Positions 17,646 through 44,740 are shown, numbered from the whole stretch's first letter. The stretch is DNA of 63,324 nt, filler included, from Octopus bimaculoides (GCF_001194135.2; 8 parts of 7 records of this genome joined end to end with filler, not necessarily neighbours in it), one strand, 5' to 3'. A program made the numbers and translations. Notes: a model not told the origin generated them from the letters alone.

Positions 17646-18774
17646 CATTGGTTTCCTCTGCAATATGTAGCACTATCCATTGTTTTACAAGTTCTTCATA
17701 ACCAGTAAGATTCATACTGCAAGAGATTAAAAATATTAGCAGAGATGGAAAATCGGAATTTCAGATGGTTGAACTTCTGAAAAAAAAGCTCTAGCAATAA
17801 AGGCCAGTGAGATTGCGAAACTTTAGATATTAAAATTTTGTAAAGTTTAGTCATTCTCTGGGACATCCTCTTTTATTATTATTATTTTTTTTTTTTTTCG
17901 ATACACGTGTAAGGAAAGTGAGAACTTATTAATGTTTGAAAAGTTAATAGATGGAAATATTTAACAAAGAAAAGAAAGAAAACGAATTTACGTTGGCAAT
18001 AAAATTTTACAATGCATGACAAACCCTAACATTACGCAGTGCCCTAATCCTAAACTCTAACCTCAGCCCTAAACTCTAGACCTTAAACTTAAACCAATGT
18101 CTTCCTTCTTATCATTATATAACTCTTCACGTAAACAGCTTCCCAACTTCGACAAGAAACACATTGATTAATCACAAAGAAAATTAAAACAAAATCGCGC
18201 TGGCTACAGTGACGTAGTAATTCTGTCCATGGTGATTGGTGGCAGTGGTAGTGGCGGGGGCGATGGTAGTGGTAGATCCGTATGTTGATGCTGCATATAA
18301 CCAAGTAAATCTGTTATCTGGTAAAATTTGTAATGTTTGTTGAAAATCTTATCACCACCACTTGACCTTCACGTTTTCCTCTCGACGTCACACAAATTCA
18401 TCGGCAGTCGCCCTATCGACTCTCAAATTTCATGTTTTTACATTAAAGACATTTTTTTTTGTATGTATGTATGTATGTATTTGTTTCCGCTGCAATATGT
18501 AGCACTATCTATTATTTTACAAGTTCTCCAAGACCAGTAAAATTTATAGGCAGAGATGGAAAATCGGAATTTCAGATGGTCGAACTTACGAAAAGAAAGC
18601 TTTACAATGAAGCTCAGGGAGATTACGAACCTTTAAATATTGAAATTTTGTATACTTTAGTCAATGAAATCTATCCTCTGCAACATCCTCTTTTATTAAA
18701 AAAAAAATTTTTTTTTTCGATACCAGAGAAAGGAAAGTGAAATCGTATTTATTTTTGAAAAGTTAACAGATATA

Positions 18775-19140
18775 GGCGTAGGAGTGGCTGTGTGGTAAGT
18801 AGCTAGCTTACCAACCACATGGTCCCGGGTTCAGTCCCACTGCGCGGCATCTTGGGCAAGTGTCTTCTACTATAGCCTCGGGCCGACCAAAGCCTTGTGA
18901 GTGGATTTGGTAGACGGAAACTGAAAGAAGCTCGTCGTATATATGTATATATATGTGTGTTTGTATGTGTGTGTTTGTCCCCCCAACATCGCTTGACAAC
19001 CGATGCTGGTGTGTTTATGTCCCCGTAACTTAGCGGTTCGGCAAAAGAGACCGATAGAATAAGTACTCGACTAAAAGGCGGTGCTCCAGCATGGCCACAG
19101 TCAAAGGACTGAAACAAGTAAAAGAGTAAAAGAGTAAAAG
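18775..19140 (+). mobile_element. SINE family A inserted into one cassette copy
   Basis: Near-full body from ggcgtaggagtggctgtgtgg to (aaagagt)n tail. Interrupts ttaa.agat|ggaaatatt, which is contiguous in the copy at 17945. Confidence 0.92.
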
Positions 19141-20116
19141 ATGGAAATATTTAATAAAGAAATGAAAGAAAAACTTACGTTATCAGTAAAATTATTTTAC
19201 AAGGCATGACAAAACCTAACCTTATCAATGCATGACAATCCCTAACATACGCAGCACCCTAACTCTAAACCTTAACACGAACCTCAGCCCTAGACTCTAG
19301 ACCTTAAACATAAACCAATGTTTTCATTCTTATCATTATATCTCTTCACATAAACAGCTTCCCAGCCTCGACAAGAAACATTGTTTAATCACAACGACAA
19401 TTAAAACAAAATCGCGCTAGCTACGGAGATGTAGTAATTCTATGTCTATGGTGATTGGTGGCAGTGGTAGTGATAGAGCAGTTGTAATGTTAGATCCGTA
19501 TGTTGGTGCTGCATATTACAAAGTAAATCTGTGACGCAGAAAAAATTTGAAATGTTTCACACAAAATTGTGTCACCACCACTCGGCCTTCGTGTTCTCCT
19601 CTCCACGTCACCCAAGTTCACCGGTAGTCGCTTCATCGACTGTCAAACTTCATATATTTTGGAATTACGGAAATTTTTTTTTTTTTTTCTGAAAGTTGAT
19701 CAGAACTCGTTTGACACACTGACAACCAAATATTTGTGACCTTGTCCAGCAATTGGAAAACATTTTTCAAGGCAGACCGGGTAAGATTTGTGTCTCTTTG
19801 CCAAGACAAATAACCATGATCATGCAAGACTATGGAATTAACTTGCTTTTTGTTTTGATTCTCCTTCCATTAATAGCTTTTAACGAATAATTAAGTAAAA
19901 TGTGATATAAAGAATACCTACGTTAGAGACAAATTTTAGTTTTTTGTGACCCGCATTCTTCCTAGGTGAACTAGTTGACGGTCTGCAGTAGAGATCGGTA
20001 AAATCTTCCGTTTGACCCGGTTCGCACATATTCCACTGAATATGAAATATTAACCTCCGGATACACGTAGTTTAAAAGTTAATTTCAAGACAAAATGTTC
20101 GCAGATACCCGTAAAA

Positions 20117-20180
20117 GGTTCTATAGTGTAATGGTTAGCACTTTGAATCCAGCGATCCGTTTTCAAATCTCGGTAAACCT
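20117..20180 (+). pseudogene. tRNA-Gln(TTG) pseudogene with 7-nt anticodon-arm deletion
   Basis: ggttctatagtgtaatggttagcactttgaatccagcgatccgttttcaaatctcggtaaacct lacks actctgg and has an altered B box. Confidence 0.85.
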
Positions 20181-21415
20181 TACAAACTGCGTATTGTATT
20201 TTTTTTTCCGGTTATATGACTGTTGAAATGTCAAATTGATTTTCAGTTGACTCACGAATCAATTATTTCTGCGCTTTCCGAGTATGTGAATTCATAAGAC
20301 CATAATGACTTTCTCTTTATCCGAAGGACATCTGTCTGAAACGTTGCATTTCTATTCTTCCTCGGATCATAAATCATATTCCCTTGTCTGAGCACACCGT
20401 ATTATTTCACACCAAAACACATTCATAAAATTAGTGAATCAGTTTAATATTCTTATAGATATCATAGATATGAAGATAATTTTAACTGTATGTATGTATG
20501 TATGTATGTATGTATGTATGTATGTATGTATGTATGTATGTAGGTATGTATTGCTTTTCTCTGGAATGTGTAGCACTATCCATTATTTTACCGGTTTTCC
20601 AAGACCAGTCAGACTCTTCACATAAATAGCTTTCCTACCACAACAACAAATATATTGTTTAATTGCTACATCAATTAAAACAAAATCGTGCTGACTACGG
20701 TGACATAGTGATTGTATTTCCATGATGATTGGTAGCTATGGTGGCGGCGGTAGATGCGTATGTTGGTGGTGGTAGATGCATATGTTGGTGCTGCATATTA
20801 CAAAGTAAATCTGTCATCTGGTAAAATTTGAAATGTTTCACACAAAATGATGTCACCACCACTCGCCCTTCACATTCTCCTTACCACGTCACCCAAATTC
20901 ACCGGAAGTCGCCTCATCAACCCTCTAACTTTATGTTTTTGTATAAATTTTTTTTTTTTCAAAACCTGATCAGAACTCGTTTGACACACTGACACAGACA
21001 AATTTCAGTGACCTTGTCCAGGAATCAGAAAACACTTTTCAAGGTACACTGGGTAGGATTTATGTCTCCCTGGTCAAGAGAAATAAATTATGCACTTATG
21101 ATCATACAAGACTAGGAAAAGCCTGTTTTTGTTTTTTTTTTCCTTTTGATTCTCCTTTCCATTATAACCATTTAACGAACAAAATGTTTTCCAAAGTTGA
21201 TATAAAGAATAACCGCATACCTACGTTAGAGACACGTTTTAGTTACGTGAGATTAGGCGAACTAGTTGACGGTCTGCTGTAGGAATCGGTAAAAACCAGC
21301 CCGATGCTCAGTTTGATCTGGTTCGCACATTTTACTGAATATGAAATAATAACTTTTGGATACAAATAGTTAGAAAGTTAATTTCAAAACAAAATATTCC
21401 AAGGGAGCTGTAATA

Positions 21416-21487
21416 GGTTCTACGGTGTAATGGACAGCACTCTGAGCTTTGAATACAGCGATTCGAGTTCAAGTCTCGGTATAATCT
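21416..21487 (+). pseudogene. Degenerate tRNA-Gln(TTG)
   Basis: 72 nt, colinear with 40371-40442 but with mismatches in the anticodon and acceptor stems. Confidence 0.8.
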
Positions 21488-22476
21488 TGAAAGCTAAATG
21501 TTATACATTTTTCTTTCGGTCATATGAAATCAAAATGTCACATTTATTTTCAACTAACTCACCAATTAATAATTTCTTTGCGTTCCAATTATGTGAAGTC
21601 ATAAGACCTTGATGACTTTCTCTTTCTCCAAAGGACAACTGCCTGAAACGTTACATTTTTATTCTTCCTCGAATCATTAATCATATTACCTTGTTTGATA
21701 ACACTGTATTACTTTACGCCAAAACACAACACCATTCATCTGTTGGTTCTTTACAAATTGCTGTACATTCGTTTATTTATCAATGAAATCAAGCTATGAC
21801 TACCATAAGAGATATGCTACCATATTCCTTTCTTTATGACTGATTAAATGGAAAAAGTTTGAAAACTTTAGTGATGTAAAATAGAATTAGTAATTGAAAC
21901 TGCGTTCCTAACGGAACTCTAGATATGTTCGTCCATTATTATGGCTTTATTCGTCTTCCAGATGACAATGAAATAAAACTGATGAATCTGTTTAATATTA
22001 CTATGAATATCATAGATATGAAGAAAACTCTAAATGTATGTATGTATGTATGTATGTATGTATGTATGTATGTATGTATGTATGTACGTATGTATGTATG
22101 TATTGGTTTCCTCTGAAATGTGTAGCATTATCCATTATTTAACTAGTTTTCCAAGACCAGTCACATTGATACTGCAGGAGATTAAAAACATAGATGGAAA
22201 ATCAGAATTTCAGATAGCTGAACTTCTGAAAAGAAAGGATCAGCAATAATGACCAGTGAGATTACGAACCTTTAAACATTGAAATTTTCGATACATTTGG
22301 CAATGAAAGCTATTCATTCCGTGTATCTACTTATTCATTTTTCTATACATGCCTAAGAGAAGCCGCAAATTATTATTTTAAAAAGATTAATAGAAAACAT
22401 TTAAAGATGGAAATATGTAACAAAGAAAAGAAAGAGAACAAATTGACGTTTGCAATAAACTTTTACAATGCATGAC

Positions 22477-22558
22477 TAACCCTACCCTAACCCTAACCCT
22501 AACCCTAAACCCTAACTCCAGCCTAAGCCCTAAGCTCTAAACCTTAAACCTAACCTAA
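22477..22558 (+). repeat. Interstitial telomere-like (CCCTAA)n tract
   Basis: Four perfect CCCTAA at 22485-22508 plus degenerate units. Homologous decayed tracts at about 18023-18093, 19213-19315 and 25060-25135. Confidence 0.75.
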
Positions 22559-24946
22559 TGTTTTCATTATATAACTCTTCACGTAAACAGCTTCCCTACC
22601 ACGACAACAAATATTTTGTTTAATCACAGCGACTATTAAAACAAAATCGCGCTGGCTACGGTGACGTCGTAATTGTATGTCCATGGTGATTGGTGGAAGT
22701 GGTAATTGTGGCGATGGTGGAGGTAGATCCGTATGTTGGTGTTGCATATTACAAAGTAAATCTGTCATCTGGTAAAATTTTAAATGTTTCACGCAAAATC
22801 GTCACCAAAGTTCCCTGGTGGTCGCTTCATCGACTCCCAAACTTCGTATGTTTTAGAATTAAGAAATTTGTTTTGAAAATTGATTAGAACTTGTTTGACA
22901 CACTGACACAAGCAAATTTTAGTGACCCTTGTCCAGGAATCGGAAAACATTTTGATAAGCTTTTAACGAAGAATTAAGTAAAATGTTTCCCTACGTTGAT
23001 ACAAAGAATGACCACATACCTACGTCAGAGATAAGTTTTAGTTACAGGAGACTAGCTTTCTCACAAGGCGAACCAGTTCACCGTCTGCGGTAGAAATCGG
23101 TAAAATACAGTCCACTCCTCCATTTGACCCAGTTCGCACATATTCACTGAATAAGAAATATTAACTTCCGGGCACACGTAGTTTGGAAGTTAATTTCAAG
23201 ATAAAATGTCTCACGAATCAATAATTCCTTTGCTTTCCAAGTATGTGAAGTCATAAGACCTTAATGACTTANNNNNNNNNNNNNNNNNNNNNNNNNNNNN
23301 NNNNNNNNNNNNNNNNNNNNNNNNNNNNNNNNNNNNNNNNNNNNNNNNNNNNNNNNNNNNNNNNNNNNNNNNNNNNNNNNNNNNNNNNNNNNNNNNNNNN
23401 NNNNNNNNNNNNNNNNNNNNNNNNNNNNNNNNNNNNNNNNNNNNNNNNNNNNNNNNNNNNNNNNNNNNNNNNNNNNNNNNNNNNNNNNNNNNNNNNNNNN
23501 NNNNNNNNNNNNNNNNNNNNNNNNNNNNNNNNNNNNNNNNNNNNNNNNNNNNNNNNNNNNNNNNNNNNNNNNNNNNNNNNNNNNNNNNNNNNNNNNNNNN
23601 NNNNNNNNNNNNNNNNNNNNNNNNNNNNNNNNNNNNNNNNNNNNNNNNNNNNNNNNNNNNNNNNNNNNNNNNNNNNNNNNNNNNNNNNNNNNNNNNNNNN
23701 NNNNNNNNNNNNNNNNNNNNNNNNNNNNNNNNNNNNNNNNNNNNNNNNNNNNNNNNNNNNNNNNNNNNNNNNNNNNNNNNNNNNNNNNNNNNNNNNNNNN
23801 NNNNNNNNNNNNNNNNNNNNNNNNNNNNNNNNNNNNNNNNNNNNNNNNNNNNNNNNNNNNNNNNNNNNNNNNNNNNNNNNNNNNNNNNNNNNNNNNNNNN
23901 NCCTACGTCAGAGATAAGTTTTAGTTACAGGAGACTAGCTTTCTCACAAGGCGAACCAGTTCACCGTCTGCGGTAGAAATCGGTAAAATACAGTCCACTC
24001 CTCCATTTGACCCAGTTCGCACATATTCACTGAATAAGAAATATTAACTTCCGGGCACACGTAGTTTGGAAGTTAATTTCAAGATAAAATGTCTCACGAA
24101 TCAATAATTCCTTTGCTTTCCAAGTATGTGAAGTCATAAGACCTTAATGACTTATTCTTTTCTCCGAAAGACAATTCTCTGAGACGTTACATTTCTATTC
24201 TTCTTCGCATCATAAATCATATTACCTCGTCCGAACACACTGTATTCCTTCACGCCAAAATACAACATTGTTCATTTTTTTATTTCTTACAGTTTTCCTG
24301 TTTTAAGTAAAGCCAATTGTTGGATATTTGTTTATTTATCAATGACATCAAACTATAACTGCCATAAGAAATGTGCTATAATATTCCTTCTTTTATGACT
24401 GATTAAATGGAAAAAAGTTTGAAAATTTTAGTGGGATAAAACAGAATTAGTAATCGAAACCGCGTTACTAACAGATCATCAAAGATGTTCGTCACTTACT
24501 ATGGCTTTATTCGTCTTCCAGGTGTCAATGAAATAAAATTAGTGAATCAGTTTAATATTCTTATAGATATCATAGATATGAAGAGAATTTTAACTGTATG
24601 TATGTATGTATGTATTAGTTTACTCTGGAACGTGTAGCACCATCCATTGTTTTACAAGTTCTCAAAGACCAGTAAGATTGGTGCTGCAATAAATCAAAAA
24701 TATAAGCAGAGATGAAAATTCAGAGTTTTAGATGGTCGAACTTCTGAAAAGAAATGTCCAGCAACAAAGGCCAGTGAGGTTACGAACCTTTAAACATTGA
24801 AATTTTTATACTTTAGCCAATCAAATCTGTCCATTCACATACTTGGAAAGCAAAGAAATTATTGATTAGTGAGTTAATTGAAAATCAAGGCGACATTTCA
24901 ATAGTCATATAACCGAAAGAAAAAGAAATATGATATACAGTTTTTA

Positions 24947-25019
24947 AGGTTGCGCCGAGATTTGAACTCGTATCGCTGGATTCAAAGTCCCGAGTGCTAA
25001 CAAATTACACCATAGAACC
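24947..25019 (-). pseudogene. Degenerate tRNA-Gln(TTG), inverted relative to the cassette
   Basis: Reverse complement ggttctatggtgtaatttgttagcactcgggactttgaatccagcgatacgagttcaaatctcggcgcaacct. D-loop insertion and several stem mismatches. Confidence 0.8.
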
Positions 25020-26180
25020 TATCGCAGATACCGTCGAACATGTTGTCTTGAAATTAACTTCTTTTCGATATATGCGTATCCTTATCCTCATCCTAATTCA
25101 ACCTGAGCCCTATGCCCTGACTCATAACTAACTCCAATGTTTCCATTCTTATCATTATAAAACTCCTCGCGGAAACAGCTTTATTACCATGACAACAAAT
25201 ATATTGTTTATTTACAACAGCAATTAAAATAAAATCGCGCTGGCTACGGTGACGTGGTGATTGTATGTCCATGATGATTGGTGGCAGTGGTGGTGGCGGC
25301 GGCGGCTATGGTGGTAGATCCGTATGTTTTTGCCGCATATGACAAAGTAAATCCGTTATCTGGTAAAATTTGAAATGTTTCACGCAAAATCAAATCACCA
25401 CCACGAGACCTTCACATTCTCCTCTCCACGTCACCTAAGCTCCCCAGAAGTTGCCTTATCGACTCTGAAACTTCATATATTTTGGAATGAAGAACATTCT
25501 TTTGTAGAAAGTTGATGAATTGATAATAATTGAAAATTGATTAAATAAAATTAAAATTTACCTTAGTCACGTAAAATAGAACTAGTAATGGGAACTGCGT
25601 CTCCAACTGAATTCCAAAGATGCTCGTCGGTTTGAATGGTTCTTTATGTTTTGTGATCAAGTCTCGCGAAATGTGATTTTGTTCTTCATCTTTCAGAGAT
25701 TGATGAAGTGAAATATAGCTACTAAATGAGTTTAATATTTCCATGAAATATAGATATGATTGTAATTTTTAATTGATGACTACGACTACTTCGTTTTTTT
25801 TAAAATTTTTTTATAAGTTTCGTCTTCAGTAAGCNNNNNNNNNNNNNNNNNNNNNNNNNNNNNNNNNNNNNNNNNNNNNNNNNNNNNNNNNNNNNNNNNN
25901 NNNNNNNNNNNNNNNNNNNNNNNNNNNNNNNNNNNNNNNNNNNNNNNNNNNNNNNNNNNNNNNNNNNNNNNNNNNNNNNNNNNNNNNNNNNNNNNNNNNN
26001 NNNNNNNNNNNNNNNNNNNNNNNNNAGAATAAAAATAGGTTAAAAATAGGGCAGGGGTGGAACTTCAAAATTCCATGTGGTTGAACTTTTGAGGAGAAAG
26101 ATCAAAAAATAATGGCCAATGAAGTTACGAACGTTTAAACATTGAAACGTTTGATAATTCGTTCTCTCTAGCGCTGTTTT

Positions 26181-26224
<44 letters not shown>

Positions 26225-27003
26225 TTTCCTGATATGCCCGCAAGGAAAATCGGATCATTTCGGTTTGGCTGCATCTGTAGAAACTTTTAGGCTTTGTGAA
26301 AATTTTAAAATTTGGTGTATTGATGTAATTTTCCACGCTAAATCTCAGGAGATACTTCACTTTTCTCGGAAGAGGTTTAAAGTTTAATCGTTTTTACCCA
26401 GTTAGAAAACAGGATTTGGAAGCTGTCATTGTGTGCGTGACAGCACGTGTTGTCAACTGTAAACAAATGAAATATTGGCGGAATTCTACTTTTCGCACGT
26501 CATATAACCCCTCATAACAATTTTATTGTTTTGAAATTTCTAGAAAATTTTTGCGAATTTGTATTCTACACACAAGAATTCATACGATTATGCAAAAGCA
26601 AAAAAAAAATTTTTTGTGCGTGACTTAAGGCCTATTTAGCTGTTATTTTTTGCACATCTCATAACCACCTCATACCGCATGTGTTTTAAGCATTTAGTAA
26701 GCGACAAAAAGAAAACGTAGTAAGCAGCTTGGTAACAGCTTGGCTTGTTACTATGGCAACAGGTACCTATGTGTCTGTGGCTTTCGATTGGTTAAAATTA
26801 CCCAAAATGTGCAAACTTTAAAAGCTGTTAACTCTCTGTTTATTGATTTATGGCGAAAATGAATTTCATGTCAAGGATTACTTTACAAAACTCCGCCAGT
26901 ACATCAAATATGAAATCAATTGGAACAAAAATTGAAGAAATTGAAAAGTGGCAGCTAAACAGAAAAGATCTTACAGTATGTTATTTAAAATACTTAAGTC
27001 AAT

Positions 27004-27734
27004 GCTGAAGACACCTCCGAAAGGGAGTGGCCCCGCCACGTCAAAACGGTAGAGGAGTAGGGGCCGAAACCGGACGTGGTTCCTCCTGATGATGTCTTGA
27101 GATAACTGGATCCTATAAAGGAGCTGTTGTGGTAGCAGACCACGAAACATGGTTGAAATTCCTTCCTCAGNNNNNNNNNNNNNNNNNNNNNNNNNNNNNN
27201 NNNNNNNNNNNNNNNNNNNNNNNNNNNNNNNNNNNNNNNNNNNNNNNNNNNNNNNNNNNNNNNNNNNNNNNNNNNNNNNNNNNNNNNNNNNNNNNNNNNN
27301 NNNNNNNNNNNNNNNNNNNNNNNNNNNNNNNNNNNNNNNNNNNNNNNNNNNNNGCCGAAACCGGACGTGGTTCCTCCTGATGATGTCTTGAGCTAACTGG
27401 ATCCACCAAGGGAAGGTATGTCGGAAGAAAGTAATTCAACAACGCGGGTTGATGAACCGTAAGACGTGTGGCCAGAACCTCCTGGAAAATAACCATAGCG
27501 AGGGACATTCCACAGTTGAATTAGAACCGTCACAAACAGTGAAAGAAGGCATGCACCCAACACCAGAGCTGAAGACACCTCCGAAAGGGAGTGGCCCCGC
27601 CACGTCAAAACGGTAGAGGAGTAGGGGCCGAAACCGGACGTGGTTCCTCCTGATGATGTCTTGAGATAACTGGATCCTATAAAGGAGCTGTTGTGGTAGC
27701 AGACCACGAAACATGGTTGAAATTCCTTCCTCAG
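27004..27734. mobile_element. GC-rich element with identical 167-bp terminal direct repeats
   Basis: 27004-27170 equals 27568-27734. A partial third copy lies at 27354-27404. An N gap lies inside. Confidence 0.55.
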
Positions 27735-27924
27735 TTTAAAATCACAAACTAAATATACATGATTTGATTTTTAAGTCAGCAGTTTATCAATACTTGATTT
27801 AATTTCCACACTTTTAAAGACCATATTGCGTCGTAGCAGTATGACCCTTTGTATCAAATCACTGATATTAAATTGAGAAATGCTACAATAAAATAATAGA
27901 GAAACGAAAAAACTCTATGCACTT

Positions 27925-27989
27925 AGAATCTACCGAGACTTGAACACGGATCGGTGGATTCAGAGTGCTAACCATTATACCATAGAACA
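27925..27989 (-). pseudogene. tRNA-Gln(CTG) pseudogene with 7-nt anticodon-arm deletion
   Basis: Reverse complement tgttctatggtataatggttagcactctgaatccaccgatccgtgttcaagtctcggtagattct. Confidence 0.8.
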
Positions 27990-29864
27990 TTGAAGGTTCA
28001 GTCCTGAACATTTTACCTTGAAGTAAAATTCCGCACCGTGCTTTTGTCGTTCATATTATCAGTATGCACTGGAACAGAGAATTAGCAGAATCATTAGAGC
28101 GTTATAAAAATGCCATGCTGTATATTCTTCACCTATTTACGTTCATAGTTCAAATCCCATCGGAGTCAACTTTGCTTTTCATCCTTCCAACGTCGATAAA
28201 ATGAATACGAAGTCGGTTTAACCGACTGTTTCCTTTCCATAAAATTCCTGGCATTTTGTTTTTAATGATTGCGGTATGTTCTATCCATCCAGGTACTCTT
28301 TCGATGCCTTCTCTTTGGGTTGACATATCTTGGTACGGTACTCTCCAATTATCGTCGGCCAATTTTTTTTTTTTTACTAAAGGCTTAGCCAATAAACAAT
28401 TACACTCGAGAGACGGGTGTAAGTTGAACGGCAGACTTACAAAAAATTTTTAAAAACTCTACCTCATGGGGAAGGAAAGGGACAGGCGATTGAATGATTG
28501 TTTCCTTTTGTAAAAGAAGTATTTGTCAAAAACATTAATTCTTTACATTTTTGCACTCCAATTCCTTGCTTTTTTTCTGATAATTTTTTACTCGTAAAGA
28601 GCTAAGGGCAAAGACCGTATTCTTCCAATATTCTCTCAGTTCTGGAACAAAATTTTCCATTTTACCAATACTATCCAATTCCAGAACTGGGATGATATTG
28701 AAATTTAATTACATTTATAGGGATATGATCTCGTTAGAGACAAATACTAAATGTGTTTCCTTATTGAGTAAACCTTTAATGAAAGTATTCATCCTTAAAC
28801 ATGTAGTCCTATCATGGGTAAACAGCAGCTCGCGGGACTTTCTGTGTGTCTGCGCATGCCTAACGAAAAATTATCTTGAATCCTTTTAGTAGTGCGGCCC
28901 ACCTGATGATCAGCCATGTCTCCTGCAGTTCGCTTCACGAGAAAGGTTGATCATGTCTGCTCTAGTCTTTATTTCTAAGGTAACATACAGTTAATACAGT
29001 GGAACCCGTTTATTATAATCAAGGAAAATGTTATTTACCGGTTACTGGCTTTAAAATTGACGGTTCCCAAACTTTACATTTAAAATTAATTGCAATTTAT
29101 CCGCTTACTGGACTCAAAGCTTGCGATATTGTTATACAACTAACTCTTCATATGAACCGCTTCGCGATCACTACGACAAATATATTGCTTCCAATCAGTA
29201 CGGGGATCAAAACAAAATTGCGCTACCTACGGAGACATAGTAATCGTATCTCGGTGGTGATGGTGGTTGATAGCAGAAGTGGTGGTAGTGGTGATATAGT
29301 CGTATGTTGGTATTGCATATTACCAAATAAATCTGTTATCAGGTAAAAATTGAAATGTTTCATGCAAAATCGTGCCACCCGACTTGACCTTCACGTTCTC
29401 ATCTCCACCTTACCCAAGTTCCCATAAAAATGACATCCGCTCTCAAATTTCCTGTGTTTTGCATTAAGAAATTTCGTCAGAATTCATTAGAAGTCATGTG
29501 ACACACCCAGAATTTAATGCACGTGTCAAGAGGTTGGCAATCTTTTATGAAGGCGGACCGAATAGGAAATACTTTTAATGCCTTGCTAGCCAAGACGAGT
29601 AAATTTGAAATCGTGACCCTACTAGGTAATGGATTGTTTGTTTGTTCGCTTGTGTGTGTGTGCGTGCGTGTGTGCGCGTGTATGTATGCGTGCGCGTGTG
29701 TGTACGCGTGAGTGTGTGCGTGTGTGCGCGTGTGTGTATGCGTGAGTGTGTGTGTGTGCGTCTGTGCGCACGTGCATGTATGTGTGTCAGTGTGTGCGTC
29801 TGTATAATTTGAAATGTTTTTCATCATAAGCGTTTAACGTACAATAAAAATTCTTTTCCACAGT

Positions 29865-30110
29865 GCTGTGTGGAAACCGGCACGCCAAAGAATAGACCCA
29901 GCATTTCCTCTGCGTGTCATAAAGGGCAACTAAAAGGGGTTGAGGTAGGATTTGCACTCCACCGTCATAAAACTTTCACCAGCAACGACTACCTAAACAA
30001 ACCCATGAATTGGAGAGTTGTCGCCTGAGTGGTGCAACGGTGTCATCCGTCCGAAGTAGGGAATCACCAACGAATGGTGAATGCTGTTACAGCGCACAGC
30101 GCACACCTCC
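29865..30110 (+). repeat. Interspersed repeat resembling an RTE 5' UTR
   Basis: Homolog of 9265-9505 in the opposite orientation. Confidence 0.6.
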
Positions 30111-30532
30111 ATACACCTAACAATACCACAGTGAAGGATAACCCAAAGAACAAGCTTTTTCTTAACAACATAATATTTAAAAGATATTTCTTTCGCTAAG
30201 CCACAAAGGATCCAAAGATTCAACACAAAATTATTAACATGTAACAAACACGGTAGTGAAAATAGCACAATTCTAGTATGATAATATCTTGAGGGGAGCA
30301 TGTATTTTGTTATTTGTTTTAATTTCAATATATAATGTCATAAATTTTTTTTTTTAAAAACACTATTAATATCTGGTTTCACTTTTCAGTTCAGATAACT
30401 TTGTGGTGCAATGTAAATATATATATATATATATCTTTCATTTCCCGAGAGTCCAGTAACACAATCTGTATCACGTCATCGCGTTGTTGTTTTTTGTTGT
30501 TGTTTTTTGTTGTTGTTTTTCTTTTTTGAACC

Positions 30533-30570
<38 letters not shown>

Positions 30571-30973
30571 TGGACAAACGATGCAGCGGGTTTGATCTGG
30601 ACCGCAAGCCATTGTTTACCGATCTCTGCTATGGACAATAACGTAATTTGCTTAGTACCCAGCGCCAGTCCTTCATTTTAATAACTATGCTTCTAACAAT
30701 AAGCATAAGGGCAGAAATTTGGTTAGGGGAAGGTTTAGTCGATTGACTCAACCTCAATAGTTCACTAATACTTGATTTTATCGAACCAGAATAGATGAAA
30801 GGCTATGCCAAGGTCAGTCTTTTTTTTTTCTCCCTTTCCTGCTTCAGGGTTTGATAAAATAAAGTACTAATGAAGTACTGTAGTCTAATTTCTTCCCCCG
30901 CAAATTTTTGGTCTTATGTCTACGTTAGAAGCAAATGACAACTCCACGAAGCAGTGGTTTCAAGCAAGCAAAA

Positions 30974-31045
30974 AGTTCTATGGTGAAATGGCTAGAACTT
31001 TGGACTCTGAATCCAATGTTCTGGTCTCAAATATCGGTAGGACCT
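30974..31045 (+). pseudogene. Degenerate tRNA-Gln(CTG)
   Basis: agttctatggtgaaatggctagaactttggactctgaatccaatgttctggtctcaaatatcggtaggacct; B box destroyed. Confidence 0.75.
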
Positions 31046-31786
31046 ACGGAGTTAACTTGCTTTCTCTTTAAGTATCTGTCGTTTATATAATTACTAATGC
31101 ATGACGTTGTTCTGCGCCTGAAATAGTTAATACTTTGTTTCATTGAAATATAAGTATAAATGCAAGACAGAATTAATAAAAAGGAGGTAAATCAATATTA
31201 AAATAAAGAAACATTTAATTAATCAAAATACTTTGCTGGTCATTTTGCTTGTCACGCTGAGCTAAGCTTAATCATTAAGCGGGCCCTGCTGAGTATGAAG
31301 TTTATAAAATTGTGCATAAAGTATATAAAGTGTACATATAAAGTACATTAAGTAAACATCGTGTTTCAATTTCCTTCACTTTTCACTGATTAGCAGATGA
31401 GCAGCTATCTTTTTATACAGGCACAGCACAAACTACGCTTTCAGGTTTTTTGGATAAAGTTTTCAGAAATAACCCAACAACTTTACCATTAATTCCGTGA
31501 AATATTCACAGATCTCGTTAGTTCTTATGAATATGACAATACTGTCTGGCTTTCAGCATGTATTTACAAACATAAACACACAAATTTCTTAACGCGATCG
31601 TTAAAAACATTTAGTCCAATAATAAAGCTACCTCTTTCGAAAATAAGAAATTCCTTATTTTCAATGTGTGTATCTTAATAAGTTGTCATAACTGCAGAAG
31701 TTTGTCTCACTCACCCGACTCTGTTACTGCATAACTTACTGGAAAATGTTTTTTTTTAAATTTTCATATGAAATTTTCTACAATTA

Positions 31787-32300
<514 letters not shown>

Positions 32301-32319
32301 TACGGGTGTGTGGGGGGGA

Positions 32320-32870
32320 GTGTGTCTTTATGTCTGTTTGTTCCCCATCACCGCTTTGACAACCGGTGTTGGTGTGTTTACGTCACCGTAACCTAGCAGT
32401 TCACCAAAAGAGGCCGATAGAATAAGTACCAGACTTTAAAGGAAAAAGGCTTACAGTTTGGCTCACAGATGTTTTAATTATTTTTTTTAACTAAACAGAT
32501 TGAAACTTCATACACTGGTGAAATGTCTCACGCAAAACACGGATTACTTTGAACATTTTTGACAAAATTTAGTATTTTAGAAGTTATTTCATGTTAAAGT
32601 TGTCGTATCTGGGTAATTTCAACCAATCAACGACGTGTATTCAGTTGAAGAAAGCTATTGCTGTTTGCGATAGTAAGATAGTGAGACATTCCACCAGTAT
32701 ACGAAATTTCAAACTGTTTAGTTTTAAAAAAATGTAATTAAAAAATCTGTGAGCCAAACTGAACAAATTCGGGAAAAGGGACTGGGGTCGATTCGTTCGA
32801 CTAAGATCCTTCAAGGTGCCCCAGCATGGCTGCAGTCTAATGACTGAAACAAGCAAAAGATAAACGATAA
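32320..32870 (+). mobile_element. SINE family A 3' half, interrupted by a MITE
   Basis: ccgctttgacaaccggtgttggtg...gatagaataagtacc [MITE] ggggtcgattcgttcgactaa...cagcatggctgcagtctaatgactgaaacaag. Confidence 0.75.
32454..32761. mobile_element. Tc1/mariner-like MITE
   Basis: 27-bp TIR cagtttggctcacagat(g/t)ttttaatta at both ends with one mismatch. TA on the left, AA on the right. Confidence 0.8.
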
Positions 32871-33458
32871 AAGACAACTAATTCCTGAAGGGTAAGTGTG
32901 GAGAATAGACCTTTTTTTTTTTTTTGAACACCATTGTAATCTACATCATCAAATTGTATGAAGAAACAAAGTCCAGATGCACGAAATAACCCCACCAGCA
33001 TTTTTTCACATTAAATTCAGATATAATCTTAATTTTAATCTACATCATATGAAAGGTATTTGTGTGAAAATTTCATTAAAATATACCCATTTTACTCTAA
33101 GTTGTGTGAAAACAAAATCGCAGTTTGTGAATAATTCGAAACTCCTTTCATCCATCCTGAAAAAGTTTTACTTTCCATTGACACAGTCTGAAACGTATAT
33201 GTAGAAAATTTCATTAAAAAATATCGATTTTTCAGACGGTTATGAGAAAGCAAAGTCAGCGGGGGCACGTTTCTATAGTTATGTCAATAAATTAGCTAAA
33301 TGTCTGATGAACCTGTTGAGAAATGAATATTTCTGTACATACATACACGCATAAATACGTGCATACATACATACATACAGACAGACAGACAGACAGTACA
33401 ACTGTCATATTCGTATACATATGCACTTGTGGGCACATACATATATGCATACATAAGG

Positions 33459-33511
<53 letters not shown>

Positions 33512-33664
33512 GAAAGAGACAGAGAGAGTGGAAAGATTTGCGAACCAAGCCTGAAGTTAAGTGGAAGACGGACAGATTTCACGAATCAAAATTTTCTTTG
33601 CTTTATAAAACACCGTGGCTCAAAGTTTAATTTCAAGATAAAATGTTGCCAACTGATAATGTGA

Positions 33665-33736
33665 GGTTCTATGGTGTAATGGTTAGCACTCTGGACTTTG
33701 AATCCAGCGATCCGAGTTCAAGTCTCGGCAGAACCT
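33665..33736 (+). tRNA. tRNA-Gln-TTG: tRNA-Gln(TTG), near-intact
   Basis: Full cloverleaf with intact A and B boxes; one acceptor mismatch (A7:C66); T-run terminator at about 33748. Confidence 0.88.
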
Positions 33737-34257
33737 TGTAAACTAAATTTTTTTTATTTTTACGCATCTGTCATTATTATCAAAACGTGTTACACTGATT
33801 TTCAACTAACAATAATTTCTTTGATGTTTTAGTATGTCAAATATTGTCATAATCATAAAGTCTCTATATCTATCTCTTCCTCCGAAGGAGAGCAAGTATC
33901 CGAAATGTTACACTTCTTTCTTCCTCGTATCATAAATTAAATTCCCTTGTTTGAACACTCTTTATTACTTTATGCCAACACACAACATCATTAATTTCTC
34001 GATGTTTACTGTTTCCCAGTTGTGAGTAAAGCAAATTGCTAGACATATGATTATTTGTCAATGACATCACGCTATGACTTGCATAAGAATTGTTCTGCTA
34101 ATGTTTTTTTTTTGCGTGAGATTGATTAAACGAAAAAGATTAGTGATATGAAATAGAACTAGCAATTGAAACTGCATCACAAACTAAAGTCCACTTTAAG
34201 CTGGCTCTTGATGTTCTGTGCTCAAATCTCTCCAAAATTAACTTTGTTTCTCGTTTA

Positions 34258-34460
34258 GTAGGAGTCGGCAGAATCGTTAGCACACCGAGCTTAGCAGCAT
34301 TTTGTCCGTCTTCATGTTCTGAGCTCAAATACCGCCGAGATCAACTTTGCCTTTCATCCCTTCGGGATCGATAAAATAACTACCAGTTGAGTTCTGGGTT
34401 CATTATAATCAATTTACTCCCTCTCTCGAAATTGCTGACCTTGTGTCAAAATTTGAAACC
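34258..34460 (+). mobile_element. SINE family B
   Basis: gcagaatcgttagcacaccg...actttgcctttcatcccttcgggatcgataaa. Confidence 0.75.
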
Positions 34461-35010
34461 AGTATTCCTGTGAAATATCATAGATATGATTGGAACTTTA
34501 ATTGAAAACTATGACTACGTCTTGTTTTATATTGGTTTCCTCTGGAGGAAGGGATATTGTCCATAGTTTTACAAGTTTCTCCAGACTAATGAAAATTGCT
34601 GATCAAAAAGAATAAAAATATGGGCAAAGATGGAACTTCAGAATTCCAGATGGTTGAACTTCTAAGAAGAAAGGTCTAGGAATAAATGCTTGTGATGTTA
34701 CAAGCCTTTAACCATTGAAATTTTTGATACTTTCACACAATTAAATCTATCCACTCTCTACAACACCGTCATGTTTTTTTATGGTGAGGAATAATTAAAA
34801 AGAAAAGAATTTAATGAAAGAAAACAATGATGAAATTATGAATATTTGCTGGGGTTTTTTTTTTCTTTTTTCGTTGGACCGTAATGGAAAAAAATAAAAT
34901 GAACATTTCTCCCAGTCGTTTGAAGATTTATATTTATATACAATTAGAATAATAATGTTATTGCCATAATCATAGGTCTTGTTTTCGATCGCTAGAAATA
35001 ACAGCTGAAA

Positions 35011-35241
35011 GGCGGCGAGCTGGCAGACACGTTAGCACGCCGGGCGAAATACTTAGCGGTATTTCGTCTGTCTTTACGATCTGAGTTCGAATTCCGCCGA
35101 GGTCGACTTTGCCCTTCATCATTTCGGGGTCGATAAATTAAGTACCAGTTACGCACTGGGGTCGATGTAATCGACTTAATCCCTTTGTCTGTCCTTGTTT
35201 GTCCCCTCTATGTTTAGCCCCTTGTGGGCAGTACAGAAATA
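35011..35241 (+). mobile_element. SINE family B, full length with 17-bp TSD
   Basis: Flanked by agaaataacagctgaaa at 34994-35010 and 35242-35258; tRNA-like head with A/B boxes. Confidence 0.93.
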
Positions 35242-36224
35242 AGAAATAACAGCTGAAATGAAGCGAAAACACATGAATTGTCAATAAAAGAAAACAATGA
35301 TGAAATAAAACAATGTAAGAAAATGAATTTTTTCAACTTTTTTTTTTACACAGAATGTAATGACAGATTTTTTTTTCCTGATTTTTAAAATGAGATGCAA
35401 TAAAAGAAATGGGACTGAGCTATACACTCCGGTATCTTTTCATATAGATCACATCTTTTGTACTTGCGGCGTCAAAAACTCGCAGAGATACGAGTCCACT
35501 GTAGAACGGTGAGTATCACAGCATCGCCGTTTATTCCCTCGCTTAAGTGCTTTCTCCTTTTTGAGTATGGATCCCGTCTTGCGAGTTTACAAACTCAGTA
35601 TAGTAGCTCACCATTCTATGGCAAAATTGGTACCCTGTGTAGTGGATATGTATCCTGTCGTAGTGAGTTGGTCTGTTGGGTTTGAATAAACTGCAGAGAC
35701 TCGGTAATCGAAGTATAATTTCATTTATTTAGCATAAATGATACAGCGTTGATCGGACATCGAAACATATCACTACATTACAAACGTGTATAACTAGCTA
35801 CGAGTTATATGCGGAGAAAGCATGTATTTGGTTCAGCTTGATTGATTGCAGTGAAAACCGCTGTTAGTACATGCGAGTATCTTGGCTGAGTTGATAGCAG
35901 TTAAAACCGCTTTTCGTACGTTCGAGTCAGAAACTAGATTCAGACTGCCCATCTATTGTTCCCGGTGTTGTATTTATAGTTAGCAGCATGGTAGACGATT
36001 TATTTTTAGCTACGGTGAAATTCTGCTGCTGATTTACAAAAAGGGCGTCAATTTGAGGTTTTCACTAAGGGAGCTGTCAATCTATTTTTAGCTATGATGA
36101 AATCTNNNNNNNNNNNNNNNNNNNNNNNNNNNNNNNNNNNNNNNNNNNNNNNNNNNNNNNNNNNNNNNNNNNNNNNNNNNNNNNNNNNNNNNNNNNNNNN
36201 NNNNNTCGAATCTACCTTTTGATG

Positions 36225-36500
36225 CCTATCTACTTGACAGAGATAGGCAACAAGACTGTCTCTCACCGATCCTACCGTCCAGACCTTGCACCCTTTGATT
36301 TTGGTTGTTTTCCAAGTTGAAGGAAAAGTGGAAGGAGGCTGTGACGAGAGTCCTGGACACCTTCACTTTGAAGACCTTCCAGGGGTCCTCATGAAGTGGC
36401 AGGAGCGCAACAGTAAGTGCACTGAAGTCAGCGAATCCTACTTCCAAGAAGATTAGAGTTTTGTACTTTGAAATTCATTAAAAGTCTTGAAAAAGTCTCT
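36225..36500 (+). mobile_element. Mariner transposase C-terminal fragment
   Basis: SYRPDLAPFDFWLFSKLKEK...KEAVTRVLDTFT matches the mariner YSPDLAP.DF.LF motif. Confidence 0.8.
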
Positions 36501-36569
36501 AACCAAGAGTAGGCGAAATTGCCCCAGAGCTAGGCAGAATTTACTGATAAAAATTAAAACGACCAATAA

Positions 36570-37725
36570 ATCCCACCCAGCTTCAAATATTCCTAAAATT
36601 TCAACTTCTTAAGAGTTAGTAAGACCCCTTAGTGGGGGCTTAATCCCCACAATTTAGTCAATTTTTCTAAGCCAAGACGGATACAATTGTAGTCTTGGAA
36701 GCTGTAGCGTCACTCGAGGATACAAGATGAGCGTTATTTGTAATTCAATGGTACAACAGTGTAAAAGTTTGCTTTGAGATATACTTAGATTGTGATTTCT
36801 GCAATGTGGTGCATAAATTGTCAAGTAAAAGAGACGCATCTTTGCCTCCATCGATTCAGTTGCAAAGTGTTATTTTGAGAAAAGTTATTTTGCTTGCAGA
36901 CCTCCTTTGTGTCCTTTTATTATCACTGGGTCAGAGATAGTCCCCAGATGGTAACACTGATTTCAAGTCCTTTACAGGTAAGTGATTGGTCATTCAGAGA
37001 GATTTATAGATTGCAAATTTATTCTGTTCAGTTACCTATCGGTGTAGTGATCATTGGAAAAATCCAGAGGTGACACTTTCATTTCTCCTTAGCCCTCACG
37101 TCACACAGTTGTTAATGTTTATTTGAGTTGGGTCATACCCTTCCAATTGCTATAGATCCGTAATGCATCTTACTGCTGTGCCGGTCACCTCTATGGTCAA
37201 GGATCCTACATTGGGGAGTGGTGACGATTAGGGTAGGGTAGCTGACTGCTTATTGTGATCATTCGTTTTATGGTTTCCTCTAGCTTCGCTCGCTTTTACA
37301 AATCCAGTGAACATTCATATATTTCCGATTTCAAAGAAATTTGAACAATGGATATAAGACACAAGTTAAAAAAGATTCTCAACAATTCAACCTCTCTGGT
37401 TGTCTTTAGGACCCCCTCCTCTAATAGGGGTCTTAACTCCCACATTTTAGAGCTCCATTTTTCAGGAGCAAAAAGTTTTTAAAAGGTTTTCTAAGATTTG
37501 GATTTTGGAATCTGGGCATAAAGATGAGTAGTATGGGATAAATATGTCGTGATGAGAATTTTTGCTAGGGTGTGTAAAGAGGGAAGGAACCCTCTTAAAA
37601 ATTCTTAATCTCCAATTTTGATGAAATTAAAATCATAGGTATTCCAGTTCATTAGAGAAAATATAAAAGAAAAGTCTAATTCTTCAATGCCACGTGACAC
37701 GGGCAACGCCGGGTATCTCTGCTAG
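36570..37725 (+). mobile_element. Non-autonomous Helitron-like element, copy 2
   Basis: Colinear with 15130-16278; ends cacgggcaacgccgggtatctctgCTAG|t. Confidence 0.8.
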
Positions 37726-38029
37726 TATGTCATAAAATGTAAGTGTAGATACGATACATCTGATAAATAAGACGAGATGGTCAAAAATTGAAAACATTTG
37801 ATCATAAGCCTATTCAGTTCAGATACGTGACCTGTGGCTAAGCAATATCAATTATTAAATGTTATTTTCTAATGGAGTCAGTCATGTGTGTCGTCAAACA
37901 TTTTTAACACGTCATTCTTTACAACCGGATTAAAATGTACTACTCCCACTGCACTCTTTACTCTGTAGTACAGGTTTCTTTTAACCTCATACAAAGCCTC
38001 TGTATTTTTAATATAATAACAATATTTAT

Positions 38030-38200
38030 AATAGGCAAAACGACAGGAATTTAATGGAAAAGAAACTGTCGGTTATATCGACTTTGGTACTTGACTGGTA
38101 CTCTGTTTTATCATCGTCGGAAGGATGAAGGCAAATTTTACCACAGCAGGATTTGAACTCAGAGCATAAAGATGTAGAACAGATAAAAAAACCACGTAGC
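38030..38200 (-). mobile_element. SINE family B, degenerate
   Basis: atcgactttggtacttgactggtac...ggatgaaggcaaa...ggatttgaactcagagc. Confidence 0.6.
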
Positions 38201-38328
38201 GTTTTTCTAATTTTCTAGTGATTCGGCCAATCTACAACTCTCTTACATACTGATACAATGAAAAAAATAACAAAAGCACGTGACATGATATTTATTTTAA
38301 GATTAAGTGTTCACTTGCGAGCAAGTGA

Positions 38329-38400
38329 GGTTCTATGGTGTAATGGTTAGCACTCTGGACTCTGAATCCAGCGATCCGAGTTCAAGTCTCGGTAGTACCT
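38329..38400 (+). tRNA. tRNA-Gln-CTG: tRNA-Gln(CTG), near-intact
   Basis: Canonical tRNA-Gln sequence with one acceptor mismatch (T4:T69); T-runs downstream. Confidence 0.88.
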
Positions 38401-38471
38401 AAGTATCTGTTTTCTTTTGATTTCAACATATCAGTTTAAAATCAATGATTTGGTATGATGAAATATGATAT

Positions 38472-38900
38472 TTAAAATACTTGCGGAAAGCAAAGCGAAT
38501 ATTGATTAAAACCTTCCTCCGTTTCCAAGGATTTTACCGAGTGCAGTTGTGCAGTTTCAATGTTTTTTAGGTGTACTTCGATGGTACCGAACTTTTTCCC
38601 TCTGGCTAGATGTGATATCTTGGGCTTTAGACATTTCTCTACCTTCTCCTCACTTACTCGCTCGATTTTTTTCCCTTTTTGGCTGTATGTTTTAGATATA
38701 ATTGTTTCTTTTTTCTCTGTCAATAAAATCTCTTCTGGGGGTTGAACCTTGACAACGCCGTCTTTAATTATTACCATGTCCCTATACATTAATAAGTCAC
38801 TTTTATTCGTCGACAGTTGGCGAGTTCCATCTCCAACTGCACCAATATGTCCAAGTCTTCTAAAGACTCCTAACTCGTAATTAAAGCTGGTGTGGATCAC
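38472..38900 (-). mobile_element. Putative L1/Tx1-type ORF1 fragment
   Basis: Open 142-aa frame with KIERVSEEKVEKCLKPKISHLARGKKFGTIEVHLKN. A degenerate homolog (EFGTIEF) lies near 51190-51290. Assignment is by recollection of ORF1-like motifs only. Confidence 0.4.
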
Positions 38901-38949
38901 AATTACGAGATAAGTGAAGCAGTCAATAACGTTGACATTTCCACCGACA

Positions 38950-39150
38950 ACAGATTTGAGATTGGTTCTTTGTCTTTACCAAAGAAACTCCACGATCAAG
39001 TGGTTCTGCTTCTTCGTTCAGTGACAGGAGCACACTCCTTAGGACCCCAAGAGACTCAGCAAGAATAACCACATCATCAGAAAAATACAGGTTAGTAATC
39101 CTAGTTTCACCAGTGAGTGCTCCACAACTCGATAGTACCACCATGTCTAC
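38950..39150 (-). mobile_element. RTE-type RT fragment
   Basis: ITNLYFSDDVVILAESLGVLRSVLLSLNEEAEPL...VSLVKTK (degenerate FADD motif). Confidence 0.7.
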
Positions 39151-39869
39151 ATGCACTTGGGAGTGGATTGATGAGAAACAGAAGCACGAGTGAGTCGCGA
39201 GTGTTTAAGTGAAAGTGAAGCGAAACCAGTCAACTTCGAGGAGCAGAGACAATTGTTGTAGTTTTAGAGAAGATAGAATGAAGAGATCCCACGGCGGCTG
39301 GAGTACCTTGGCGAGCGAATTCATGCTAATCAACAGGCTTACCATTTAGGTGGAAAATATCCGAGTGATTGAGCGTGTGTTTGCGTGATTAGGGCACAAC
39401 AAAAGGGAGTACTTGCCAAGTCCTGAGGCGAATAAAATATTCCTACAGAGCGTCATCGACGTGAATGAAATTTTAATAGAATTTTAAACACTTCGGTCTG
39501 GAGGTAGGCATTTTATTCGACATCTTCGATTATGAGGAAATACCAAAGAATTTTCGATAATACTATCACGGGACAATTTTCATTTATATATTCACGGGAG
39601 TGTCTAAGTCTTTGTAGTATCTTGACTTGCAAGAAATAGCAGTCAAATCTCCCACTTATAACTAGATGATGTAGCCTTAGATACCCTTAAACCAAAGCAA
39701 TGGTTGCAGTTTAAACGCCTTCGATCGGATATATGCTTAATCACAATCGGTCAGGAGATAGCAAGAACATCAAATCTACATGTATACATGAAAGCATAAT
39801 AAAAATAACGTTGAAAACGCATGCAACAAGATTCTATTTGAAGATAAAACTTCGCATCGACTTTTAACT

Positions 39870-39941
39870 GGTTCTATGGTGTTATGGTTAGCACACTGGA
39901 CTCTGAATCCAGTGATCCGAGTTCAAGTCTCGGTAGAACCT
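39870..39941 (+). tRNA. tRNA-Gln-CTG: tRNA-Gln(CTG) variant
   Basis: Stems intact; substitutions include A14>T in the A box; followed directly by a T-run. May be weak or non-functional. Confidence 0.8.
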
Positions 39942-40370
39942 TTTTTTGTTTCGGTACTTATTTGTTAGAATGGGTATGTAAAAAAAAATCAGTATTTTTT
40001 AAAATAAATAAATAAATGACGTCACACAATGGCAGAAATAGAACTCGTACTGTTCTACTGTTCCTGTTCCTTCCTCAAGATTGATGAACATATCAGTGAC
40101 GTGAAATACTTACAACAAACCATGGAAACTGCATTACAAGCTGTACTCAATGGGAGTTTATCTCTGAGTCACCGGTCACTTTAAGCTACGTCTTTACGTT
40201 CTGTGTTCCAATCTTACCGAAATCAACTTTACATTTAATTTTTCTGGGTTGTTGATGAAATAAGAGCCAAAGTACTGAGTTGATTTAATATTCCTTATAA
40301 TGCATGAGATGAGAATGGATTCTATTTCAAGATTCTATTTGAAGATAAAACTTTGGCTCGATTGCGGAGT

Positions 40371-40442
40371 GGTTCTATGGTGTAATGGTTAGCACTCTGG
40401 ACTTTGAATCCAGCGATCCGAGTTCAAGTCTCGGTAGAACCT
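40371..40442 (+). tRNA. tRNA-Gln-TTG: tRNA-Gln(TTG), intact
   Basis: ggttctatggtgtaatggttagcactctggactttgaatccagcgatccgagttcaagtctcggtagaacct; perfect stems; TTTTT about 14 nt downstream. Confidence 0.96.
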
Positions 40443-44660: not shown

Positions 44661-44703
44661 TGCATATATATATACATACAAACATACATACATACACACA
44701 TAC

Positions 44704-44740
<37 letters not shown>

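Follow-up and report, generated by a model that had tools for sequence, protein, structure and literature searches.

An 18-nt block at a fixed distance upstream of clustered tRNA-Gln copies in Octopus bimaculoides, a candidate extragenic Pol III promoter element

Here we describe a cluster of glutamine tRNA (tRNA-Gln) genes from Octopus bimaculoides and a conserved block of DNA lying before them, which most likely serves as an upstream promoter element for RNA polymerase III (Pol III). The window is a stretch of 63,324 nucleotides, filler included, in which eight parts of seven records of the assembly GCF_001194135.2 are joined end to end. The region analysed within it runs from 17313 to 44740 and has a G+C content of 37%. 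Nine tRNA-Gln-like sequences were found within 20 kb by ARAGORN, Rfam and a similarity search, and neither ARAGORN nor Rfam found any other tRNA type or Pol III gene between 17313 and 44740.

Four of the nine copies are intact genes, with scores of 62-69 bits (ARAGORN and Rfam). The first, a tRNA-Gln(UUG) at 33665-33736 (+), scores 62.5 bits, carries a single acceptor-stem mismatch (A7-C66) and is followed by a run of eight T residues (T8) from +12. Two tRNA-Gln(CUG) genes lie at 38329-38400 (+; 63.2 bits, T4 from +10) and 39870-39941 (+; 66.6 bits, T6 from +1). The best-scoring copy, at 40371-40442 (+), is again a tRNA-Gln(UUG), with 69.2 bits and T5 from +14.

The remaining five copies, at 20117, 21416, 24947, 27989 and 30974, are decayed. 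Three of them score 34-37 bits, slightly over the Rfam threshold: a degenerate tRNA-Gln(UUG) at 21416-21487 (+; 36.5 bits, identity 63/72), a second degenerate tRNA-Gln(UUG) at 24947-25019 (-; 36.9 bits), which has an insertion in the D loop/A box, and a decayed tRNA-Gln-like copy at 30974-31045 (+; 34.3 bits, 58/72). The other two received no ARAGORN or Rfam call and were detected by similarity only. One is a tRNA-Gln(UUG)-like pseudogene at 20117-20180 (+), with a mutated B box, 60/72 identical positions relative to the best copy and T9 from +19, and the other is a tRNA-Gln(CUG)-like pseudogene at 27925-27989 (-). Both have lost the same 7 nt of the anticodon arm, between direct repeats CTCTG / CTYTG, and their flanks are otherwise unalignable; the common deletion reflects either recurrent slippage or shared descent.

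All copies except the one at 30974 are preceded by a motif with the consensus ATTTCAAGATAAAATGTT, which occupies positions -35..-18 relative to base 1 of the tRNA and is separated from it by a 17-nt spacer. The consensus occurs exactly at 33630-33647 (+; spacer 33648-33664). It is matched with one mismatch by ATTTCAAGACAAAATGTT at 20082-20099 (+; spacer 20100-20116), and with two mismatches by ATTTCAAGACAACATGTT at 25037-25054 (-; spacer 25020-25036), inside an inverted 228-bp segment (24833-25060), and by ACTTCAAGGTAAAATGTT at 28007-28024 (-; spacer 27990-28006). Three mismatches are present in ATTTCAAAACAAAATATT at 21381-21398 (+; spacer 21399-21415) and in ATTTTAAGATTAAGTGTT at 38294-38311 (+; spacer 38312-38328). 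Finally, a 17-nt variant, ATTTGAAGATAAAACTT, is found at 39836-39852 (+; spacer 39853-39869) and at 40337-40353 (+; spacer 40354-40370). Its 1-nt deletion lies inside the motif and not in the spacer; it is the only length change and belongs to one lineage. The original prediction had listed these eight sites, and its coordinates are right in every case, with 17 nt between the end of each site and the first base of a tRNA-Gln-like sequence. Its count of eight out of nine copies also stands, although their independence was overstated, as the copies are paralogues of one 20-kb cluster representing about three to four independent lineages, and five of them are pseudogenes.

A search for ATTTCAAGATAAAATGTT at up to three mismatches gave 10 matches, where 0.17 were expected from shuffled sequence and none of 100 shuffles reached 10. 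With the 17-nt variant at 39836 added, there are 11 sites, and a profile search found no further copies. Two sites have no tRNA behind them. The first, at 23193-23210 (+), lies in a stretch that is 100% identical to the surroundings of the second, at 24076-24093 (+), across an assembly gap (23272-23901). In the latter, the spacer, the tRNA and 68 nt of 3' flank were deleted, the loss beginning directly behind motif base 17 (junction 24092|24093). Because their 253-bp surroundings are identical across the gap, the two are probably one locus and should be counted once.

When the eight tRNA-anchored copies are compared without gaps, the invariant positions are TT at -19/-18, A at -24, A at -29, TT at -33/-32, TT at -38/-37 and A at -41. 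The spacer measures 17 nt in all eight copies without an indel; the flanks, meanwhile, are rich in indels. Of the 18 consensus positions, 14 are A or T, compared to 63% in the analysed region. A TATA-like core, GATAAAA (-28..-22), is exact in three of the four intact genes and reads GATTAAG in the motif at 38294. The motif precedes both UUG genes (33665 and 40371) and both CUG genes (38329 and 39870), which makes it isotype-wide within the cluster and not anticodon-specific, and lends no support to the suggested isoacceptor-specific element. A T-run of at least four residues follows at +1..+23 in all eight motif-bearing copies. The copy at 30974 is the sole one without the motif at -35..-18, the sole one without a T-run terminator (none within 60 nt) and the most decayed.

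Other sequence features were seen close to the motif. Just before the highest-scoring gene, at 40371, 13 nt are duplicated in tandem (GATTCTATTTCAA, 2.2 copies, 40318-40346) and the 5' half of the motif is thereby repeated, with the consensus C in the displaced copy and G in the in-place copy. A weaker second block, AAAAGCACGTG, is present at about -57..-45 of the copies with motifs at 28024 (-), 38294, 33630 and 39836, and in that of 38294 it includes an E-box-like CACGTG. An 11-mer, ACAAAAGCACG, located upstream of the motif, is identical between the 28024 and 38294 copies. Next to the motif-less copy, GTTTCAAGCAAGCAAAA (30957-30973) directly abuts base 30974, and may represent either a motif remnant after loss of the spacer or a chance match.

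We then compared the motif with its surroundings. Across the eight copies, mean pairwise identity is 0.78 in the motif and 0.84 in the tRNA. The corresponding values are 0.47 in the spacer (shuffled baseline 0.44), 0.55 at -85..-36 (baseline 0.50) and 0.55 in the first 50 nt of the 3' flank (baseline 0.53). Between lineages, the block is 67-89% identical, and the stretch at -85..-36, the spacer and the 3' flank are at random level. An unbiased scan of 104 nt upstream, using four lineage representatives, 18-nt windows and 1000 shuffles, placed the best-conserved segment exactly at -35, with a sum-of-pairs score of 85/108 against a null of 48.9 +/- 2.8 and no shuffle scoring as high. With the three intact-gene lineages only, the score was 43/54 against 26.4 +/- 2.0; a control scan of the 3' flank in these three lineages reached 32/54, which is not significant.

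As the copies are all paralogues, their own flanks are the right comparison. The copies with base 1 at 20117, 21416, 25019 and 33665 form a young family whose flanks can still be aligned, and for these we counted the minimum number of changes per site, including 200 nt of 3' flank. The values were 0.22 for the motif and 0.23 for the tRNA, as against 0.71 for the 3' flank and 1.24 for the spacer. The motif has therefore changed three times less than the alignable flank (p = 0.002). A motif kept no better than its flanks had been named as the result that would count against the original prediction; the motif proved to be clearly above them and near the level of the tRNA. The -35..-18 block, reaching to about -41, is kept as tightly as the tRNA amid neutral or faster-changing DNA, a pattern that fits purifying selection relative to the adjoining flank.

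The integrity of the motif was also compared with that of the gene. GATAAAA is exact in three of four intact genes and in none of four pseudogenes, a difference that is not significant (Fisher p ~0.14), and a T-to-C change in the motif core (GACAAAA) is common to three of the pseudogenes by descent. For these two reasons, the link was not used as evidence.

The same comparisons bear on whether the block could be functionless, that is, a relic of the duplicated unit whose similarity is maintained by patchy gene conversion and from which the spacer stands out by hypermutation. The copies do derive from one local unit with weak flank homology persisting, the motif is retained by pseudogenes and by the tRNA-less copy, and the spacer changes faster than the flank. 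Furthermore, the genes at 39870 and 40371 share a block of 26/26 identical upstream nucleotides beside a spacer that is only 8/17 identical, as originally reported together with spacer sequences that we found to be correct. However, both sides of the block have diverged to random level between lineages where the block itself has not, a contrast that also bears on whether simple duplication might explain the pattern among these local paralogues. Gene conversion would need to have struck the same 18-24 nt time and again and left out the 17 nt next to them, and the threefold deficit of motif changes in the young family is measured against flank that is still alignable. We consider a relic of this kind decidedly improbable.

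The strong divergence of the spacer, already part of the original prediction, was borne out. Within the young family, only 1/17 spacer columns are invariant, compared to 68/177 in the 3' flank (Fisher p = 0.007; Mann-Whitney p = 0.002), so that spacer changes exceed those of the 3' flank (p = 0.002-0.007). No special explanation is called for, however, since the inner 5' flank of transcribed tRNA genes is already known as a hypermutable zone (PMC6130373). At active tRNA genes, divergence is raised about 4x over reference DNA in the first 20 nt upstream, and also about 1.5x in the following 20 nt (-21..-40; PMC6130373). The octopus cluster resembles the situation described by Thornlow et al. 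2018 (PMC6130373) in its hypervariable inner 5' flank (1.24 in the spacer against 0.71 in the flank) and differs from it in that the -21..-40 zone, more divergent there, is occupied here by the conserved block. The excess of spacer divergence matches what transcription-associated mutagenesis would predict, and the pattern implies that the motif-bearing copies or their recent ancestors were transcribed. In composition, the eight spacers (-17..-1) have a G+C content of 49%, compared to 35% at -135..-36 (p = 0.004). Position -17 is C or G in seven of the eight and position -1 is A or T in all eight, with no sequence conservation otherwise.

A variable spacer is difficult to combine with the idea that the block is transcribed within a long 5' leader, or that the whole unit is a mobile tRNA-derived element, resembling a short interspersed nuclear element (SINE), with the block at its 5' end. 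In favour of this idea, the homology of the copies with motifs at 25054 and 33630 to other family members starts just ~6-30 nt upstream of the motif; likewise, 39870 and 40371 are homologous over a 115-bp unit between -43 and the tRNA 3' end. A transcribed or mobilised unit would nevertheless keep its spacer, which is the most variable part here. The 3' flanks are unrelated between lineages, the T-run terminators come directly after the tRNA (+1..+23), a common body or tail is lacking, target-site duplications were not seen, and a Pol III leader normally comprises just a few nucleotides (PMC6130373). In a SINE, conservation would begin at base 1 of the tRNA next to an unrelated upstream flank; in this cluster, a conserved block lies upstream, beyond the variable 17 nt. 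Taken as a whole, this explanation is scarcely credible. We rejected the tRNA-derived SINE or mobile unit on account of the variable spacer, the lack of a shared 3' body and the terminators right after the tRNA, and a long-leader RNA element was judged unlikely on the same evidence.

Judged from sequence comparison, the block at -35..-18, whose invariant A/T positions reach ~-41, is most likely an extragenic promoter element upstream of these tRNA-Gln genes. In the type-2 Pol III pathway, TFIIIC bound to boxes A and B sets TFIIIB at a defined upstream distance. In the octopus genes, TFIIIC at the internal A/B boxes would thus position TFIIIB (TBP, Brf1 and Bdp1), and an A/T-rich, TATA-like sequence at that position would strengthen TFIIIB binding and DNA bending. 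Stronger binding would in turn lead to higher transcription from a fixed start site. As placement would be measured from box A, the element would be functional at one distance only, which may be the reason for the invariant 17-nt spacing. Start site, short leader and melted region would all fall within the spacer, which, carrying little sequence information and exposed to transcription-associated mutagenesis, would diverge faster than ordinary flank. Position, A/T richness and fixed distance together fit a TFIIIB/TBP-type upstream element, and from them we infer that TFIIIB/TBP binds the block, that transcription is affected and where it starts. The position also agrees with that of published TATA-like elements of tRNA genes: counted from the mature 5' end, TATA or TA-rich elements are placed at -34..-29 (PMC3082873), and those of S. 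pombe and A. thaliana at -34..-28 (PMC11547032).

Several observations weigh against a promoter element. All of the evidence comes from paralogue footprinting in the three to four lineages of a single 20-kb cluster. The pseudogene copies keep the motif, and the tRNA-less copy at 24076 has it intact; present-day selection cannot explain a motif in dead copies, whereas recent gene death can. The GATAAAA core is inexact in one intact gene (GATTAAG at 38294), and the published -34..-28 interval falls on the less TATA-like half of the motif, ATTTCAAG. Finally, the upstream identity between 39870 and 40371 (26/26) exceeds that of their tRNAs (68/72), which hints at gene conversion alongside selection.

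The conserved 18-24 nt also exceed an 8-bp TATA box in length and specificity, as would be expected if the block were the site of a sequence-specific regulator, for example of the GATA type (core AGATAA), that modulates Pol III loading, chromatin or insulation. AGATAA is present in the motifs at 33630, 39836, 40337 and 24076, and the weaker second block further upstream would suit such a regulator, as would the report that animal tRNA genes have no common TATA element and carry isotype- or anticodon-dependent motifs (PMC3082873). On the other hand, the strict distance and the complete absence of spacer indels are more readily reconciled with a factor that TFIIIC puts in place than with a regulator independent of it. 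Nor is the GATA core kept better than its neighbours, reading GATTAA at 38294 and GGTAAA at 28007. A regulator site therefore appears improbable to us, and a TFIIIB-type promoter element remains the interpretation we favour.

A degenerate array of ~1.27-kb units, 74-84% identical, spans 17635-25503 and carries the copies at 20117, 21416 and 24947 as well as the motif-only copies, with one deletion and one inversion. It also includes, at 22476-22555, a degenerate run of (CTAACC)n, which is complementary to the telomere repeat TTAGGG. Four assembly gaps fall in the region, none of them between a motif and its tRNA. The gap at 23272-23901 is abutted on both sides by a 253-bp perfect direct repeat (23019-23271 and 23902-24154), and 167 bp at 27004-27170, next to the gap at 27171-27353, recur perfectly at 27568-27734, ~214 nt past it. 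Each repeat probably represents contig ends that overlap but were left unmerged, or else a tandem duplication of very recent date; the lengths of these two gaps are unreliable. Both sides of the gap at 25835-26025 are colinear with the repeat unit, and the fourth gap is at 36106-36205. Three rearrangement junctions lie within ~30 nt of a motif: the deletion at 24092|24093, the edge of the inverted 228-bp segment at 25060-25086 and the homology edge of the 33.6-kb copy at 33605-33622. They may mark breakage near sites of the Pol III complex, or may be there by chance.

Further features were recorded around the tRNA copies. A reverse-transcriptase-like fragment, LYFSDDVVILAES, lies between two of them at 38926-39204 (-), and an exact look-up of the 142-aa open reading frame (ORF) at 38472-38900 gave no record. 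Ends of C2H2-like ORFs (CxxC…GLxSHxR) are present at both edges of the region, at 17315-17590 (+) and 44423-44713 (-), and searches with them (17315-17587 and 44423-44713) found no homologue with shared words in the protein database. A dispersed repeat of ~200 bp, 81-85% identical, adjoins (TG)n microsatellites at 18766-18978, 31780-31989 and 43175-43339. Rfam matches to 'mir-297' and to snoRNAs were microsatellite matches far under the gathering scores, and were disregarded.

Metagenomes were scanned with the 5' half of the tRNA, which gave 45 contigs with 50 genes of other eukaryotes; none of these genes has the motif, and they serve as negative controls only. Upstream of 49 metagenomic tRNA-Gln loci that share this 5' half, no site within -60..-1 came closer to the motif than 6 mismatches. 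Its absence from these loci indicates that the motif does not simply come with this tRNA sequence. A scan with the 3' half of the tRNA of this lineage found one eukaryotic contaminant contig in a bacterial metagenome-assembled genome, without the motif, and the same type of scan of viral contigs gave no matches.

Other upstream arrangements were seen among the metagenomic loci. Two loci of another eukaryote from one sample (L012 5131-5148 and L015 2947-2964) have identical tRNA-Gln(UUG) genes in unrelated flanks. They share ATAAGCTSCTTTTAYC at ~-33..-18, followed by unrelated spacers, and thus display a position-locked upstream box of a different sequence. In six marine contigs (L007, L008, L013, L014, L029 and L034), the 3' end of another tRNA (…GGGTTCGAATCCCATCCTCGTCG) is located 10-17 nt before the tRNA-Gln, and such closely spaced pairs may be co-transcribed.

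Animal tRNA genes are usually described as driven by internal promoters, with upstream flanks that lack a strong shared signal. The block bears on the question of how individual tRNA genes or isotypes are regulated, at present within the scope of a single cluster and a single inference. The locus offers a clean paralogue footprint, in which a block of 18-24 nt is kept at a fixed distance within randomised surroundings and next to the fastest-mutating zone. Should the block turn out to occur on all active tRNA-Gln genes, and only on these, it would open isotype-specific Pol III control to direct testing in a non-model animal, and would be of use as a marker that separates live tRNA genes from the many dead copies. 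A bolder proposal is that the tRNA-Gln genes of this animal lineage depend on an isotype-specific extragenic promoter of ~24 nt, read by TFIIIB together with a dedicated factor, or by such a factor instead. We regard this as doubtful, if conceivable. If true, the supply of tRNA-Gln could be switched independently of other tRNAs, through a strong position-locked upstream code such as animal tRNA genes are believed to lack. The parallel of ATAAGCTSCTTTTAYC in L012 and L015 would then suggest that upstream boxes private to one isotype are widespread and have escaped notice.

Upstream elements of tRNA genes, isotype or anticodon motifs and a hypermutable inner flank are all known already, and the block is a further case of a known kind. 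The silkworm tRNA-Ala genes studied by Ouyang et al. in 2000 reportedly depend for their activity on an A/T-rich upstream element and a TBP-TATA interaction, and differences in the upstream element are said to distinguish the tRNA-Ala gene copies. Function was shown experimentally there and is deduced from sequence here, and the two sequences are unrelated. The TATA elements of S. pombe and plants (PMC3082873, PMC11547032) are likewise extragenic, A/T-rich and fixed in place at ~-34..-28, and are taken as the TBP/TFIIIB site. Unlike the octopus block, they measure ~6-8 nt and occur on nearly all tRNA genes of a genome; the block is 18-24 nt long, has so far been seen on tRNA-Gln copies of one cluster, and has its best TATA-like core (GATAAAA, -28..-22) a few nucleotides nearer the gene.

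In the mouse, the 4.5SH gene, of type 2 with internal A/B boxes, requires a TATA-like box at -31/-24, TTCAAGTA, in which the C at -29 is important (PMC7279448). This box of the 4.5SH/4.5SI genes (PMC7279448) resembles TTCAAGAT, found at -33..-26 in the octopus motif and followed there by GATAAAAT. The registers coincide, however, only if the octopus transcripts have a ~2-nt leader, and the mouse genes belong to another gene class and phylum, so that the resemblance between TTCAAGTA and TTCAAGAT could be due to chance. Animal tRNA genes for one amino acid have also been found to share motifs on the 10-nt scale within 100 nt upstream, in genomes without a general TATA element, and human tRNA-Gln CTG and TTG genes have a motif in common (Zhang et al. 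2011, PMC3082873). The positions of such motifs vary, whereas the block described here is locked to one. Literature searches found no such element for this phylum-level setting. Among its known relatives, the octopus block stands out by its length, by the strictness of its position and by the clean contrast with the surrounding DNA.

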